Shown here in pieces: positions 32,468 through 38,885 of a stretch of 64,000 nucleotides of DNA. Positions within the stretch are counted from its first letter, which is position 1, and each line of letters begins with the position of its first letter. This DNA comes from Trichosphaerium sp. ATCC 40318. Taxonomy: Eukaryota > Protista > Tubulinea. Location: positions 1-64,000 of the forward strand of contig JALMLS010000332.1 of NCBI GenBank assembly GCA_038496445.1, read 5' to 3'. The notes under the pieces were generated by a model. It did not search any database, was not told the DNA's origin, and saw nothing but the letters and a program-made list of their open reading frames with translations. Position numbers and translations under genes: made by a program.

Positions 32468-33430
32468 ATGGGGTTTAAAGTAAATGGCTATTACATTAAT
32501 GGCAAGGAGGTTCATCGAGAAGACGGATTTTACGCGTATACAGAAGGAACATTCGTAATAAACAACGTCATAGTATTCTCTCTTCGTTTTGTATCAAACA
32601 GCGGCGTTGGACATAAATTTGGGACATTTCCGACTAGTGATGCAGCAATGGATGCGCTACGTAGTATAGATAGATCTCAAATACCTCATGGATCCATTAT
32701 ACGCATTGAGAACATGGTTTGTACTTTTTTTTTGTCTTATCAGGATTTTTTTTGGATGTTTTTTTTGGCTTATCTTCTTCCTCAAGGTCTACCATCATTA
32801 CGGTATATTCGACCGAGACGAAAGAGAAGTGATTGAATATACTGGTGATGCAACAACCGGTATCATGTGGATTGGTTCTAAGGGCTCAAAAGCCAATGTA
32901 CAAGCTAGTTCAATGGATACTTGGTTGTGCAAATCATTGACAATAGTGGTTGTCCCTGAGCCTGATACTAAGTTGAAACCAAATGAAGTCGTTGAAAGAG
33001 CTAGAAACCAGATTGGAAATGATAAATCTTATCACCTCATTTACAACAATTGCGAGCACTTTGCGTATGAGATGAAGACTGGAATATCAAAAAGTAGTCA
33101 GGTATGTTCAAGAACAAACAAGAAAAATGTTCCAAGTTCTTTTTTTAGGTGAAGAAAAAGGCCAAAAAGGCAAAGAAAATCGCTGTCATCTCTACAAGTG
33201 CTGGCGCTGGTGTTGGTCTGTTGGGCACCAGTGCGGGTGGTGTTAGAATTGTGTTAGGACTAGATTCTGTTTCTGCATTAGTTCCTGCATCACCAACTCT
33301 TGCTGCAGCGCTACCATTGCTAGCTCCCATGGGAGTAGGACTGTTAGCAATGGGAGCAGCTGGTGTTGTATTAGGTGTCGGAGCATATTTGATAGCACGA
33401 CACGCTATCAACAGTCAGACAGACGAGTAG
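32468..33430 (+). CDS. LRAT/PLAAT-like (permuted NlpC/P60) acyltransferase/phospholipase with Gly-rich hydrophobic C-terminus
   Basis: YHHYGIF, YHLIYNNCEHFAYEMKTG.S.S.QV; tail AGAGVGLLG...GVGLLAMGAAGVVLGVGAYLIA. Confidence 0.9.
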
Positions 33431-33784
33431 GGTTTGTTCTTTTTTTGCAATAAAACAGTAAGCGTTAGTGCAGGTTTTTAAGCTCAATTGCACGTGTAGT
33501 AGTAACTCGTTTTATAAAACACTTGTTGTAGGTACTGACAAACTTCGATTGTAGACTATGTTCTTTTCACAGGATGAAATAAAAAGATTTATGTACAAAG
33601 TATTTTACAATTTTTTTAAGGGGTTTTACAGTCACTTGATTGGCTTGTAATAGTATATTTCAATAAACACCATTATCCTTTTACAAGAACATAAAACCAG
33701 TCGTGTCTCCGACTAGTTCCTTTTGAGTGGGGAAGGAACCAGAGAGTTGAACAAAAAAGACTTCGTGATTTTTTTGTTTTTGTT

Positions 33785-36700
33785 TTAGTATATGTACTGC
33801 TCCTGTCTTTCCATTTCGAACCTCGTCTTTAGTTTCTTCGCAACATCTGTGAATGTACGTTCTACACCAGTACCAGCGGTAGCAGATGTCTCCATATAAA
33901 CCCATCGATGTCTTTGTGCTAGAGCTGACGCTTCTTCATAGTCAACTCTTCTGTTATGATGAAGATCAATTTTGTTTCCGACCAAAATCTTTACAGCATT
34001 CAACTCAACATTCTCAGCAACTTTTGTCATCCATTTCTCAGCCTATGTAGTCATGTTATTAGTACTTAGTATACACAGATAGGTACGTACATTTTGGAAA
34101 GATTGAGGAGCTGTTACATCAAAAACAACTAATACAGCATTTGTATTGCGATAGAAAGGGCTGGTGATTGCATCAAAGCGTTCTTGACCTAAAGGAAGTT
34201 TAAGTAAAATTATTATAACACTTCTTCGATTTTACGTACCACACGTATCCCATACCCTCATTGCGATAGTAGCATTATCAACTTCCATAACCTTTTCTTT
34301 CTAAACAAGCCATAAGCACAAGTTTTTTGAAGCTTTAACAAAATTTCCTTACATAATCAAGCCCAACGGTAGCAGTTGTCGCAACTGCTGCACCCTCAGT
34401 ATGACGAAGAATAAGCGTTGTCTTTCCTACATTCGCATCACCAAGAAGGAGAACCCTATGGAGGAGATTAGGACGTAATCGAAAGAGGCTGAGTTGACAA
34501 AAAAGTACGTACTTGCAAGGTAAGTCGCCATAGTCTGAACCAGCTTCAGAGTCGTTTTGAACTGATAGTGGCTTCTTTGGGTACTTTTTCTTTTTGAAAA
34601 GAGTAGCACAAAACGATTTAGTACGTTCGTGGTTGTGTAGCTTTTTGAATGCAAAATCAACTTCTTGAGCTTCGCCAGTATACTGTGGTGAATTCCTGAA
34701 AAGACATTAGACAAAACCAATTGAAAAAAGGAAAAAAAAAGAGGAAGAAAAAACCGCTATCGACACGCTCTGTATTGAGGGTGATGTATAGAGGTTAGGT
34801 GTAGGTTATTTGCGTTGGGTTGGATACGTACTTTGAGTGATCTTTGAACCTACTCTTTGACAACTTCTTTTTCATTCTTGACCTCTTTGGAGAAGATAAT
34901 TGTTTTCTTCCTTTATCAACATCTCCTTTTTTTGTTGCCTCTACTTTTTTTCTTTTTGATGCCTTTTCTGGTTTCTTCTTACTCTGTCCTTTAGGTAATA
35001 CTAGAGCTGATAGTGATCTCTTTATCTTTTCAGAACTAGAAGAGCTCTCTCTAACGTGTTTAACTGAGTCACCGCTTGTCTTCTTATGATGCTTCTTACT
35101 CTTCTTGCTCTTAGTTTTAGTTGACTTGTTTGATCTACCAGAAGATGTCTCGTCTGTAACAACTGTATCAGATCTATTAGCAGCATGACGCGGTCTTAGT
35201 TCCCGATTCAAAGTTCCAACCAGGCAGTTACTATTCTAAAAAAGAAAGGAATAAGTCACAATTCAAAAAGTCAGAATCAAAAGAAAAAATCTGTTGGCAA
35301 CTTACTTCAGACTCGAGGCTTTCAATGATAGCGATATCATTGAATTTTCTCGCTAGATCCAACGAATTATTACCATCAGCGTCGTACGAGTCAACAGCTG
35401 CCTTTTCTCTAAAAATAGAATTAGAAATGAAAAAAAAACACTGTGATTGTTTTTATTTCTAGCACGTGATGAAATAAACAAATTTCAAAGAAAACGTACC
35501 CTAGCAGAAGGTCGACAACTTCTGCTTCGCCTGCCGCCACTGCAACGTGAAGTGGTGTTACACCAAAGGAGTTTTTAACGTTAACGTCAACTCCTTTTTC
35601 TGAGATCAAGAATTGACATACTTCAGGGAACCCAAAGGCTGCAGCCCAGTGAAGTAATGAATACCTGAAATAGTGTTAGCCAATAACAAAGGCAAGTTAG
35701 AGCGTACTCTTGGCGAACAGCTTTGAAATCGATGTGACCTCCAAATCTTTTGTAGTAGTTCAAGAGTTGAGGTTCTGTGACTTGCGGATGGTTGTCTGTT
35801 TGTGAGTTGTATAAACCAGGTTGTAGTCCAGCTTGATGAAAGTATTCAGGTGGCTGATGAACAGGATCGTAAGCAACAGAACTCATTTGCATCATTTGTT
35901 GGAGAATCCATAAATCTTCAAAAAAAGTTAGGAACGGAACTTCCGCAATCAAAATAACGTACTAAGGCTGTAAACAAATTTCTGAGGGTTGCCACTATCT
36001 ACACCATCAATGATTACGTCAACTTCGATATTTGTTTTATTTGGCATGAGCCATTCGCTTCCCTTTGGCAGTAGGTTAGAACCGTTTCTTCACGCGATTG
36101 TATGCATACCAAAGCTTCCACAAGTGGTGGGATTTGTACTTCACGATACACTGGGTTTTCTGAAGGTAACAGCTCACATCTGCATCTACCGAAATGTACA
36201 AGTTGAGAACGTGCCGGGATGTTCTCGCCTAATGAAAAATTACGATAACAAGAACATAGTAAAAGATTAGTTCGTACCCAAGAGACAAGCGGTAGATAAT
36301 GGTGGATCAGAAGGACTACTGACTTCAACGCTTGGTGGTACTATCTTTAAGAAAACACTTTGTTTGTTGGTGGTAGTATAAGTCTGTTCAACACCGCCAT
36401 TATCAGTTCTTCTCCTTTTTCTAACAGAATAAGCAGCATTTGATCTCTTATTTCCAGAATCGAACTGAAATTTCAAGTATTCATGTCCTAGAGTGATTAC
36501 ATCAGCACATTGAGGTAATAGGAGAAAATGTAAATCCGTAACGTCTTTTACGGCAAAGTCAGCAACTTTTGTTTATACCTATTAAAAGTGGTCCGTTTAC
36601 TCCTCGCTTGAACAAGCGTACAGTTAGAGTAGTTTTTGAGTTACTCACGAAATGGGACGTGAAGCGACTTGGTCTTAACTTGAATTGTAGTTTAGCTTTG

Positions 36701-38480
36701 ATTATAAAGTGCTCAGCTGTTCTTATTCTAAGCGAAATAATAAGAAGACAAAATAGGAGATCTCAAGAAGATATTATGTGAATTTCTGAAAATAACGAAT
36801 CCACAGTAAACTTTTGAAAAGAATTCTTGATTGCAGTAATCACGTGACAAAAAAAAATTGCCGTAACGTCAGTAAACAGTCGAGATCAAGTTGGACTTGT
36901 ACAACCAGACGAATTAAAAGCAACCAAACAACTAAAAAAAGGTATTTGAGAAAAAACTTACGGTGCGTCAATAGAACGGCATAGAAAGATCTCCGACTGC
37001 TTCTTTGTCACAATGGTGTTACCGACCTTGTATTTGGCAGGTAAGAATCGAAAATATTGAAAAAAATAAAAAGAACAGCGAATGTGGTACCGATATTGAA
37101 AATTCCACGTAAATATTCCCGTCTACTAGTGGTTCAGAGCTTTTCACAAAGTTATCGAGATTTGCTGACTTCGATTGAGGAATATTCGCGTCTTGTATGC
37201 ATTTGAGTCCAACATTGCGTAGAGATGTATCTACTTTAATTTCTACATACGAGTAGTGCGGTACTTTGTAAGAAACTCTAGGCTGAAAAAAAACCAGTTA
37301 ATACTACGATTGACCAAAGCTCAAAAACCAAAAAAGGTGATAGTGTTTACGATACCTTGCTTTTACCGCACAGCTTGAACTCCTTGATGACACCGCTCTG
37401 CATCGTCGAATCCTCAGTATCACTCCAAACTTCATCAGTAGGGGGCGTCAACTGAAAAAAGTTACCAAATAACCATGTCATCATCACTTACAGGTCCATG
37501 ACTATTGAACATCGGATCAGTCGCGCGAGGACCTATATGACCTTGATGGTGTCTTTGCGCGCCTAGAGAGGTATTGTATCTACATAAAAAGAGTCAGAGA
37601 GTTTTCTTAAAACAAACACGAAGCTTTTTTTGTGTTTTGTTTTTTTTTTTATTCTTCGCCCAATTTTATCTGTCTACACGTGCCTCATATTTCCTTGTAT
37701 ATGTGGCGGTTCTTGTTTAACATACATGCCGTCACTATGTCCCATTACTACAGCGCCTAAACCTTCAAAAAAGTTAGTTTACAAAAGCCTTTTTTTAATT
37801 CCGTCCAAATAATACCTGCAGGCGATGACGGATATCCTGTATGTTCCTATAACGATTACAGAGTTAATTCAAATTGCCATTTCTTTTTTTTCTAATCGCC
37901 TACGCGAAACTTACGTCTTTTGCCATATGCCTCTGTACATGCTCCAATTGAGTTAATAACTCAATGCCTCTTGCTATTTTAAAAAAGTGAGATTTACAAA
38001 ACGCTTTGCAGCAAATCTCTGTTTCGTTCTCCCTTACCGTAAGGGATATGCATTGCTTTTAAATACTCTAGTTTTATATTCGCCAAGTGCACACCAGTAA
38101 CGCCCTCACTACAGAAACAGCGTTAACAAAGTAATCCTAGTATCGCAAAAACTTTGTTTTCTTTGATGAAATAACCTCATGAAGAGCTGTACGAGATCGC
38201 CAAAACCATTTCTATCCAACCAGTCTCTTAATTCTGTTTGGTTCCAGGCCTCCAGAGGCTAAAACAAACGATAATTAATAAAAAAACTCGTCTCGATTGA
38301 TTTTTTTAACTTTGAAGCTGTAACTCCATAACACGTGAAGGCATTAACAAAACATAAGTTAAATTAACTCCATAAAGCGGTGTTTGTTACAAAGCCCATG
38401 TGTGGGAGTGTAGTTCTTTTATGCGTGCGCAATACACGTTTATTTTTGATGAGACCAAGAGCACGTACTTTGCCTTCCAT
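33785..38480 (-). CDS. Multidomain protein: SAM - uncharacterised domain - IPT/TIG - ankyrin repeats - Lys/Ser-rich linker - Rab-like GTPase
   Basis: SAM: PLEAWNQTELRDWLDRNGFGDLVQLFMSEGVTGVHLANIKLEYLKAMHIP. TIG: LKIVPP...LLGENI...VHFGRCRC...VQIPP...EVDVIIDG...FVY. ANK: SLLHWAAAFG, GVTPLHVAVAAG. GTPase: GDANVGKT, TVGLDY, WDTCGQERF, GNKID, ETSA. Splice phases traced in frame from ~36727 to the stop; one unresolved join near 36870-36900. Confidence 0.8.
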
Positions 38481-38885
38481 TGTGGTGGTGTATGAAATGT
38501 CCCACTGAGAAGTATTTTGCTCATCTACTGCAAAGTCTGCCATCAGTGGCTTTCAACACATTTTGACTTATCCTTAAAAAAAAATAGTGCACAACTATAC
38601 GCGTATCATTCTCTAAACACCTCTCTAAATAAGCTAGTACGAATAAACGATGTATCGAGAATACAAACGATAGTAAAGGAGTACCATAAGTGATTCTAGA
38701 TGCGAAAAAAACAGAAAAAAACGAAAACGGCAAATCGTAAATGTTACGTTAACTTCTTTTTAAAAAAGAGGAAAACAAACCCGGTTGTACAAAAACTATT
38801 TTACTTTGAACAAACTCTTGTATGCACCTGCCTTTTTTACAACGAAAAAAAAGCAATGTACTGAAAATTTTTTCTCTTTGTTTCC

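Follow-up and report, generated by a model that had tools for sequence, protein, structure and literature searches.

Gene structure and transcripts

The window, by which we mean the whole 64000-nucleotide stretch of DNA analysed, carries on its minus strand a spliced gene of the marine amoeba Trichosphaerium sp. (Amoebozoa), which we rebuilt with 23 exons and 22 introns (Table 1). The introns are 40–234 nt long, 21 of the 22 having GT-AG ends and the remaining one GC-AG ends, and the joined exons form one ORF of 999 aa without an internal stop. The frame upstream of 38480 is open as far as an ATG at 38543, from which the product would have 999 aa, as against 978 aa from the ATG at 38480; because the 5′ ends of the transcript contigs lie at 38497–38503, either ATG may be the start.

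Table 1 Features of the SAM/ankyrin/Rab gene and their positions in the window
Feature	Position	Strand	Basis or remark
Whole transcription unit, 23 exons	33561..38543	-	Gene model, spliced contigs and L001
CDS	38543 (or 38480) to 33785	-	Gene model; 3′ UTR to ~33561
SAM domain, exons 2-4, model aa 26-95	37915..38258	-	Pfam SAM_2
Low-complexity acidic/His-Gly-Pro linker, exons 5-8, aa 97-194	37356..37846	-	Includes introns 6 and 7
Intron 6, GC-AG	37580-37683	-	GNM/RYNTS junction in P0001 and L001
Intron 7, 40 nt	37452-37491	-	Spliced in P0001; in X1, X2 and X4 by length arithmetic
β-Rich domain, exons 9-12, ~aa 176-350 (~160 aa), pI 9.8	36423..37282	-	Without recognizable relatives
Intron 10, 234 nt, GTAAGT...TTAG ends	36728..36961	-	Joint 36727/36962 in 4/4 runs and L001
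NLS-like RKRRR, aa 352-356	36408..36422	-	Read from the sequence; motif scan
Putative IPT/TIG-like segment, exons 12-14, ~aa 372-472	35963..36360	-	Residue pattern and ESM-Atlas lead
Gln/Pro-rich linker, exon 15, aa 473-541	35708..35915	-	Composition
Ankyrin repeats, 2-3 copies, exons 16-17, aa 542-631	35306..35664	-	Pfam
Lys/Ser-rich basic linker, exons 18-19, aa 632-826	34513..35235	-	Composition and joints
Rab-like GTPase domain, exons 20-23, aa 827-999, with TAA stop	33785..34455	-	Pfam Ras and PDB sequences

Spliced transcript contigs from four studies (3143, 3065, 3157 and 1130 nt) all carry both junctions between the basic linker and the Rab domain, and single contigs extend from 33700 to exon 1 with all introns removed. 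A JGI transcript contig (L001) aligns with the genome in 22 blocks and departs from it in a run of A at ~33561; the sole intron that it retains is intron 7, by which its ORF is broken and the protein would be split. Two database proteins add to this evidence, namely P0001 (MMETSP0405 Trichosphaerium sp. ATCC 40318), which is an exact match to model aa 132-724, and P0064, a single 848-aa ORF that runs from the β-rich domain through the ankyrin repeats and the linker to the end of the Rab domain. Exon 6 (37762..37684) abuts the GC-AG intron, exon 11 (36727..36579) is longer than a simple model predicts and exon 12 starts at 36487. A search of 33500-38800 against Rfam found no RNA family in the longer introns.

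A preliminary description of this DNA had held that the link between the SAM and TIG parts needs an in-frame TGA or a 1-nt indel near 36880-36890. That stretch falls within intron 10, which is removed in all of the transcript contigs, so that the link needs neither, and the correction favours the fused-gene model put forward in the same description. We regard the gene structure and the fusion, as modelled, as practically certain: Trichosphaerium really does make one spliced mRNA for a protein of ~1000 residues that ends in a Rab-type domain. In the searches for domains, homologues and folds described below, the queries were single exons, P0001, P0064 or L001, and the joined spliced model served for frame checks and for comparison with P0001 and P0064.

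The basic linker and the Rab domain share one reading frame

The linker leads into the Rab domain across two phase-2 introns, one of 136 nt (intron 18, 34696-34831; KDHSK/NSPQ) and one of 57 nt (34456-34512; LPCK/VLLLG), and both joints are present in the runs of all four studies, in L001 and in P0064. The in-frame connection through these introns, as first proposed from the sequence, is thus seen in RNA. The rebuilt model also bears out that the Rab domain has no start codon of its own, as the ATG at 34531 lies in another frame and no in-frame methionine occurs between exon 18 and the P-loop.

These observations bear on the possibility that the locus yields two products, a stand-alone Rab-like protein arising through transcription from an internal promoter, through use of another 5′ exon or through proteolysis, with the fused mRNA being minor or a read-through. 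One contig (X8) departs from the gene within exon 19, at 34669, and continues with 255 nt foreign to the window, the first 30 nt of this loose end being absent from the window when searched for; intron 18 is longer than most introns of the gene; and the transcript contigs are assemblies rather than single molecules, which cannot prove single-molecule continuity and would allow for a minor transcript starting within the gene. However, all four studies, and L001 likewise, show exon 19 joined to exons 18 and 20, no in-frame methionine occurs ahead of the P-loop and the ATG at 34531 is in another frame, as described above, and the transcripts keep no intergenic or poly(A) sequence between 34830 and 34520, where a poly(A) site had been named as the refutation of a fused gene. 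In addition, the synonymous-only variation described below extends through the Lys/Ser-rich linker, and we consider two products to be very improbable.

Exonic variation is synonymous throughout

Differences between the runs within exons were synonymous in 18 of 18 cases and were distributed over all domains (P ~1.6e-10 under neutrality). The gene is both expressed and selectively constrained. A recent product of domain shuffling with no function would be in keeping with our failure to find an orthologue of the same architecture in the searches made, but such a product is strongly disfavoured by the wholly synonymous variation, by expression in four studies, by correct processing of all 22 introns and by a GTPase domain in which all G motifs are intact.

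The Rab-like GTPase domain

The C-terminal domain matched Pfam Ras with an E-value of 4.8e-48 in P0064, spanning 161 of the 162 model positions. Its best solved relative was human Rab26 (1.2e-43), followed by Rab1A (4e-38), Ypt1 and Rab8A, and the best 60 PDB sequences were all Rab or Ypt, as they were with exon 23 alone. The domain is ~45% identical with the secretory-pathway proteins Rab26, Rab1 and Rab8, and Rab-family signature segments are recognizable. The G1–G5 motifs are intact (GDANVGKT, TVGLDY, WDTCGQ, GNKIDL and ETSAT respectively), and in the alignment with Rab26 the P-loop, the switch I threonine, DTxGQ with its catalytic glutamine, NKxD and SA(K/T) are all preserved; the WDTCGQ given earlier for G3 is confirmed both by reading and by this alignment. 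Two departures from the Rab consensus, GDANVGKT in the P-loop and DTCGQ in G3, could change nucleotide handling. Judged from these motifs, the domain is quite probably an active nucleotide switch.

The protein ends in ...EMERQEQYIY, only ~14 residues downstream of the G domain, and the transcript contigs continue past the TAA into the 3′ UTR with no further exon. As had been noted at the outset, a C-terminal prenylation cysteine is absent: there is no cysteine in the last 60 residues and none after aa 900, and no CC, CXC or CCXX geranylgeranylation motif was found at the C-terminus. Having no prenylatable cysteine, the protein is therefore not a classical lipid-anchored trafficking Rab.

The similarity to secretory-pathway Rabs would nevertheless suit a 'large Rab' that works on membranes in trafficking, recruited by its polybasic linker or by partner proteins and using the SAM, TIG and ankyrin parts as cargo or tether adaptors. 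Non-prenylated GTPases of the Rit/Rin type bind acidic lipids electrostatically, and the Lys/Ser-rich linker holds 53 K+R in 195 aa (pI 10.3). The mammalian large Rabs (Rab44, Rab45/RASEF and CRACR2A/Rab46) likewise combine a long N-terminal extension, bearing interaction or oligomerization modules, with a C-terminal Rab in one polypeptide, an arrangement compatible with trafficking, but prenylation sites at the C-terminus are ascribed to them (PMC8303950), and the Trichosphaerium protein has none. They are also metazoan and carry an EF-hand and a coiled coil, whereas the Trichosphaerium protein has a SAM domain, a β-rich domain, a TIG-like segment and ankyrin repeats, and the sequence relationship between them is limited to the Rab fold. 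Moreover, the basic region lies on the N-terminal side of the G domain instead of forming a C-terminal tail, and the K/S-rich composition, RKRRR and KRKK resemble nuclear targeting at least equally. We consider a membrane-working large Rab to be rather unlikely.

The SAM domain and ankyrin repeats

The preliminary description had read the protein as a fusion of SAM, TIG, ankyrin and Rab parts, and Pfam upheld all of these except the TIG domain, which had no match at E<=10. The SAM_2 profile matched L001:3-467 with an E-value of 2.2e-7 (31.4 bits, compared with a gathering cut-off of 20.5), the match being weak when exons were searched singly. For the ankyrin repeats, P0064 gave matches above the gathering criterion to Ank_2 (4.9e-14, 53.1 bits) and Ank (6.7e-13, 48.6 bits), and exon 16 by itself matched Ank at 3.6e-14. 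No match was found by Pfam for the Gln/Pro-rich linker of exon 15. Beyond SAM_2, ankyrin and Ras-type families, P0064 and L001 matched no other Pfam family, COR and EF-hand included.

The β-rich domain and the putative IPT/TIG segment

The β-rich domain matched no Pfam family at E<=10, and the exon-by-exon Pfam search returned only Ank, pieces of Ras and a weak SAM, with TIG absent. At the same threshold, no TIG, RHD_dimer or TIG_SUH profile was found in P0001:225-350 or in the whole protein, nor was any DNA-binding family, RHD, RHD_DNA_bind, p53, NDT80 and CG-1 included, and a phmmer search of the PDB with aa 1-400 had no match at E<=10. The residue pattern of the putative IPT segment is compatible with TIG (LKIVPPS...LLGENI...VHFG...IPP...IEVDVI...FVY). 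In addition, an ESM-Atlas feature search with P0001 aa 45-345 gave RHD_dimer, RHD_DNA_bind and TIG_SUH as the best clusters, with a TIG cluster listed too, at scores of 0.84-0.89 (152-178 shared features), which by the tool's own calibration, being below 0.9, constitute a lead only. Exon 9 alone gave no usable match in the same search. Single-sequence AlphaFold models, made with no alignment, had pLDDT values of 34 for the β-rich domain and 37.5 for the putative IPT segment, both below 40 and too low for a fold search. The IPT/TIG assignment, not supported by Pfam, thus comes from the residue pattern and the language-model lead, and we treat it as putative. The NLS-like VRKRRR previously placed ahead of the TIG was found again as RKRRR, before the putative IPT segment; from its sequence, it may function as an NLS.

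An IPT domain followed by ankyrin repeats is the domain order of NF-κB p105, CAMTA and Spt23/Mga2, and NF-κB p105/p100/Relish, CAMTA and Spt23/Mga2 resemble the Trichosphaerium protein in a β-rich domain, an IPT-like domain and ankyrin repeats in similar order together with a basic NLS-like motif. One could accordingly envisage a DNA-binding transcription regulator of the Rel/NFAT/p53 kind, whose C-terminal GTPase would gate nuclear entry or activity, perhaps after processing as in p105 or Spt23. The ESM-Atlas clusters, the pI of the β-rich domain (9.8) and the presence of several K/R clusters besides RKRRR would fit such a regulator. Against it stand the lack of any DNA-binding Pfam family or PDB match in the searches above and the ESM-Atlas scores and pLDDT values; the Rel recognition-loop motif R-x-x-R-x-R-x-x-C was not seen in the sequence either. 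Furthermore, the NLS-like motif follows the IPT in NF-κB but precedes the putative IPT in Trichosphaerium, there are only 2-3 ankyrin repeats, the RHD, CG-1 and TIG matches expected of these families are absent, and the C-terminus is a Rab domain as opposed to the death domain, IQ motifs or membrane anchor of NF-κB-, CAMTA- and Spt23-type proteins. Even for IPT-plus-ankyrin proteins such as Spt23/Mga2 we know of no demonstration of DNA binding through those domains. We grade the transcription-factor reading as speculation and think it unlikely. Its most specific form, an amoebozoan Rel/NFAT-type precursor (β-sandwich, IPT and ankyrin) with a Rab-like GTPase in place of the usual C-terminal regulatory module, such that entry into the nucleus or binding to DNA would be gated by GTP binding or hydrolysis, and not solely by phosphorylation or proteolysis, is improbable.

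No other protein with this combination of domains was found

The architecture had not been recognized when first described, and no protein that shares it was found in our protein, metagenome or viral-contig searches. Word-indexed searches, for which the queries were the whole of P0001, a segment of it (aa 40-345) and the Rab portion of P0064, gave ankyrin-only or Rab-only matches, ankyrin, TIG or SAM never being combined with Ras, and no similarity to the β-rich or TIG-like part was detectable. An exhaustive HMMER search of 1.84 billion representatives with exon 9 returned only P0001 itself and P0002; the latter is an unrelated 1588-aa repeat protein that matches by chance over 39 residues at 38%. 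The one metagenome match, of 24 residues (L002) on a high-GC bacterial contig, is also due to chance from a reading of its ORFs, and a scan of viral contigs for relatives gave nothing. The domain combination, met nowhere else in these searches, is a new variation on multidomain Rab-like GTPases.

DISCUSSION

From its sequence, the gene is predicted to encode a soluble multidomain protein of 978-999 aa comprising, in order, SAM, the acidic linker, the β-rich domain, RKRRR, the putative IPT/TIG-like segment, the Gln/Pro-rich linker, ankyrin repeats, the basic linker and Rab. The best explanation, which we hold with slightly more confidence than doubt, is that the Rab domain acts as a built-in switch in an expressed and constrained SAM/ankyrin scaffold protein; the chance that this switch acts in cis within a non-membrane scaffold may be put at about even or a little better. 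The Rab domain would then alternate between GTP and GDP and alter the binding partners of the attached scaffold, the SAM domain could mediate self-association, and the basic segments might serve to bring it into the nucleus or on to acidic surfaces. In VARP and Rabankyrin-5, ankyrin domains act as effectors of Rabs and, purely by analogy, an intramolecular, nucleotide-dependent docking of the Rab domain on to the adjacent ankyrin repeats is conceivable.

Two further groups of proteins offer comparisons. Roco proteins (LRRK2 and the Dictyostelium Roco family) also have a Ras-superfamily G domain inside a large non-lipidated protein with ankyrins, and the Pfam Roc profile does match P0064 at 3e-26, far below the Ras match. 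However, the Trichosphaerium protein has neither COR nor kinase, stops 14 residues past its G domain, and all of its best solved relatives are Rabs. RABL2, RABL3, IFT27/RABL4 and IFT22/RABL5, which work in soluble complexes, share with it a Rab-like G domain that has no C-terminal cysteine, but they are small single-domain proteins, whereas the Trichosphaerium protein is a multidomain one of ~1000 aa with a G domain nearer to Rab26, Rab1 and Rab8.

With its transcript known and its domains separable, the gene makes a clean test case. If the N-terminal module were Rel/IPT-like and nuclear, a small GTPase would here control a transcription regulator and, if true, the protein would be evidence for RHD-like factors in Amoebozoa, outside Holozoa. 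What defines Rab GTPases is that they cycle on membranes by means of a lipid anchor, and an anchorless, constrained and expressed Rab domain in a SAM/ankyrin scaffold would represent the Rab switch reused as a built-in regulatory module, much as Roc is in Roco proteins.

A single transcript encodes the SAM, ankyrin and Rab domains

The gene was modelled on the minus strand between 38700 and 33600, with canonical splice sites taken first and then adjusted to the RNA evidence. The introns are short (40–234 nt) and 21 of the 22 are of the GT–AG type, many with a GTACGT donor, the other (intron 6) being GC–AG; the G+C content of the window is approx. 37%. For the draft Trichosphaerium genome, values of 37.69% G+C and a mean intron length of 75 bp have been given (PMC10521059), in accord with these figures. 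The exons form a single ORF of 999 aa from the first ATG; counted from the ATG selected in the preliminary description (38480) it has 978 aa. Upstream of the latter the frame stays open to the former and transcript contigs extend to 38497–38503, and either ATG may be the translation start.

Coordinates of the gene model and of selected introns
Feature	Position	Strand	Details
Coding region, final model	38543–33785	minus	23 exons, 22 introns
Intron 6	37580–37683	minus	GC–AG, ends GCACGT...ATGTAG; removed in P0001 (593-aa database protein) and L001 (JGI transcript contig)
Intron 7	37452–37491	minus	40 nt; retained in L001 (L001:353–576), spliced in P0001
Intron 10	36728–36961	minus	Donor CC/GTAAGT at 36962/36961 after ...SIDA, phase 2; acceptor 36728/36727

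RNA from four studies was compared by aligning the assembled contigs to the window. Three runs each yielded one contig (3143, 3065 and 3157 nt) that extends from exon 1 into the 3′ UTR and lacks the introns, which bears out the proposed transcript from SAM to Rab, and in the fourth run a 1130-nt contig covers the 3′ third of the gene. The two phase 2 introns postulated at KDHSK/NSPQ and LPCK/VLLLG were recovered in contigs of all four runs, as the joints 34694/34831 (136 nt skipped) and 34454/34512 (57 nt skipped), both with plus-strand ends CT..AC, i.e. GT..AG in the sense of the gene. Loose contig ends at 38258 (TTTGCCTTCC...) represent the end of exon 1 in reverse complement.

Database sequences from this gene agree with the model. 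P0001, which derives from MMETSP0405 (taxon 498012, i.e. Trichosphaerium sp. ATCC 40318; Amoebozoa, Discosea), equals model residues 132–724, and an 848-aa protein (P0064; JGI contig Ga0186627_100247) is one ORF comprising a domain without assignment, the ankyrins, the basic linker and the Rab domain as far as its final residue. The contig itself (L001) maps exactly on the window in 22 blocks, the gaps being the predicted introns, including the GC–AG one, and departs from the genome sequence within a run of A at approx. 33561; the 3′ UTR is therefore approx. 224 nt long and no further coding exon follows. The only intron kept in L001 is intron 7, which by length arithmetic is also spliced in runs X1, X2 and X4. 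Its retention interrupts the frame, leaving a SAM-only product of 155 aa and the downstream 848-aa ORF, and could reflect either pre-mRNA within the assembly or regulated intron retention.

One correction concerns the region between SAM and the TIG-like segment, where an in-frame TGA or a 1-nt indel had been thought necessary at 36880–36890. Because of the positions of its donor and acceptor, intron 10 comprises this stretch entirely, and it is removed in every transcript contig. As neither a stop codon nor a frameshift has to be accommodated, the observation is stronger than originally believed. In addition, exon 11 extends to 36579 and exon 12 begins at 36487, the 91-nt intron between them being present in all runs, which differs from the naive model.

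Relative to the gene, the ATG at 34531 lies in another frame, and no in-frame Met was found from mid-exon 18 to the P-loop, in agreement with the suggestion that the Rab domain has no start of its own. The sole hint of another form of the gene is one contig of run X8, which follows the gene to 34669 in exon 19 and then continues for 255 nt, of which the first 30 nt are absent from the 64-kb window; possible sources are a paralogue, a chimeric contig or an alternative upstream exon located elsewhere. Although this contig could be taken to favour production of the Rab domain separately from the rest, the lack of an in-frame Met and the linker–Rab joints in every run make such separate products very improbable.

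Intron 18 itself showed unusual coverage, the bin 34684–34847 having a summed depth of 557 (run X2) and 727 (run X8) compared with approx. 19 and 45 for the gene. This depth comes from approx. 30 short contigs that are only 90–95% alike, and suggests that the intron carries a repeated or low-complexity pyrimidine-rich element, for which no Rfam family matched. At its 3′ end (approx. 33561) the Rab gene lies near a convergent neighbour on the plus strand (32688–33430), which consists of an ORF with an NCEHF motif followed by a Gly/Ala-rich, glycine-zipper-like ORF. This motif is typical of LRAT/H-rev107 NlpC/P60-type acyltransferases.

Domain composition of the fused protein

Pfam searches identified a SAM_2 domain over the gathering score (31.4 bits, E = 2.2e-7; spliced reference, L001:3–467), two to three ankyrin repeats (Ank_2, 4.9e-14) and a Rab domain covering the whole Ras model (4.8e-48), and found neither COR, EF-hand nor any other Pfam family. 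The best 60 solved sequences for the last domain were all Rab/Ypt proteins, headed by human Rab26 (1.2e-43) and followed by Rab1A, Ypt1 and Rab8A. The alignment contains GDANVGKT, the switch I Thr, WDTCGQ with the catalytic Gln, GNKIDL and ETSAT, and the C-terminus extends 14 residues past the last helix with no Cys and hence no lipid-anchor site; both the G3 motif and the missing prenylation Cys had been correctly noted. The basic linker contains 53 Lys and Arg residues in 195 aa (pI 10.3).

The beta-rich domain (approx. 160 aa, basic), which precedes the TIG-like segment, matched nothing in Pfam or the PDB, and no relative was found in an exhaustive database search with exon 9, in a word-indexed search with aa 40–345 or in scans of metagenome and viral contigs. 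In its residue pattern the TIG-like segment is consistent with an IPT/TIG domain, but Pfam reported nothing for it even at E≤10. Since there were no homologues, no alignment could be made of this part, and two AlphaFold models computed without one had pLDDT values of 34.0 and 37.5, too low to be of use. The sole positive signal for the N-terminal part came from an ESM-Atlas feature search with P0001 aa 45–345, in which the best clusters were RHD_dimer and RHD_DNA_bind (Rel homology) and TIG_SUH (CSL-type IPT), at 0.84–0.89 with 152–178 shared features, a putative relationship that by the tool's own calibration counts as no more than a lead. These clusters would favour reading the protein as a transcription factor; the defining profiles of NF-κB p105, CAMTA and Spt23/Mga2, with which the Trichosphaerium protein has only domain order in common, all failed to match, and we regard this role as unlikely.

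Purifying selection on the fused frame

Between the runs and the window there are 17 exonic differences, to which L001 adds one (34527). All 18 differences, located in the beta-rich domain, TIG-like segment, ankyrins, basic linker and Rab domain, are synonymous, with a probability of approx. 1.6e-10 under neutrality as calculated from the synonymous fractions of the CDS itself (0.34 for transitions and 0.16 for transversions). These data show that purifying selection acts on the whole fused frame, and a fusion without function is extremely improbable.

The positions that differ are 36575 and 18 exonic ones in the interval 33869–37024. Exonic divergence from the window amounts to approx. 0.5% in the runs labelled organism B and organism C and is always synonymous, and the sequenced material therefore includes several strains or alleles of a single Trichosphaerium species.

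Comparison with known proteins and possible function

The gene is a real fusion that is both expressed and constrained, and to this extent the interpretation in the preliminary description stands; the TIG label, DNA binding and the transcription-factor role found no support in the tests run. The architecture had not been recognized, and indeed no protein combining this type of Rab with ANK, TIG or SAM was found in word-indexed database searches (matches limited to 0.55–1.75× the query length), nor was a description found in the literature. Within searches of this scope, i.e. a length-limited word index and an exhaustive search by one exon, the fusion appears to have no known counterpart. Mammalian large Rab GTPases likewise have a long N-terminal extension and a C-terminal Rab domain, but their modules are EF-hands and coiled coils, and prenylation sites have been described in these proteins (PMC8303950), whereas the Trichosphaerium protein has neither an EF-hand nor a C-terminal Cys. 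A G domain embedded in a protein with ankyrins is likewise seen in Roco proteins, which, however, require a COR domain that is missing here.

We class the gene among multidomain, non-prenylated Rab-like GTPases. A role in membrane trafficking is rather unlikely; instead of a membrane-cycling Rab, the G domain would most likely be the built-in nucleotide switch of a soluble scaffold, in which SAM may provide self-association. Judging from Rab effectors of the ankyrin type, the ankyrin repeats could plausibly serve for docking of the Rab domain in cis. Such a scaffold may enter the nucleus or else bind acidic lipids, as suggested by its RKRRR, KRKK and KKKK motifs.
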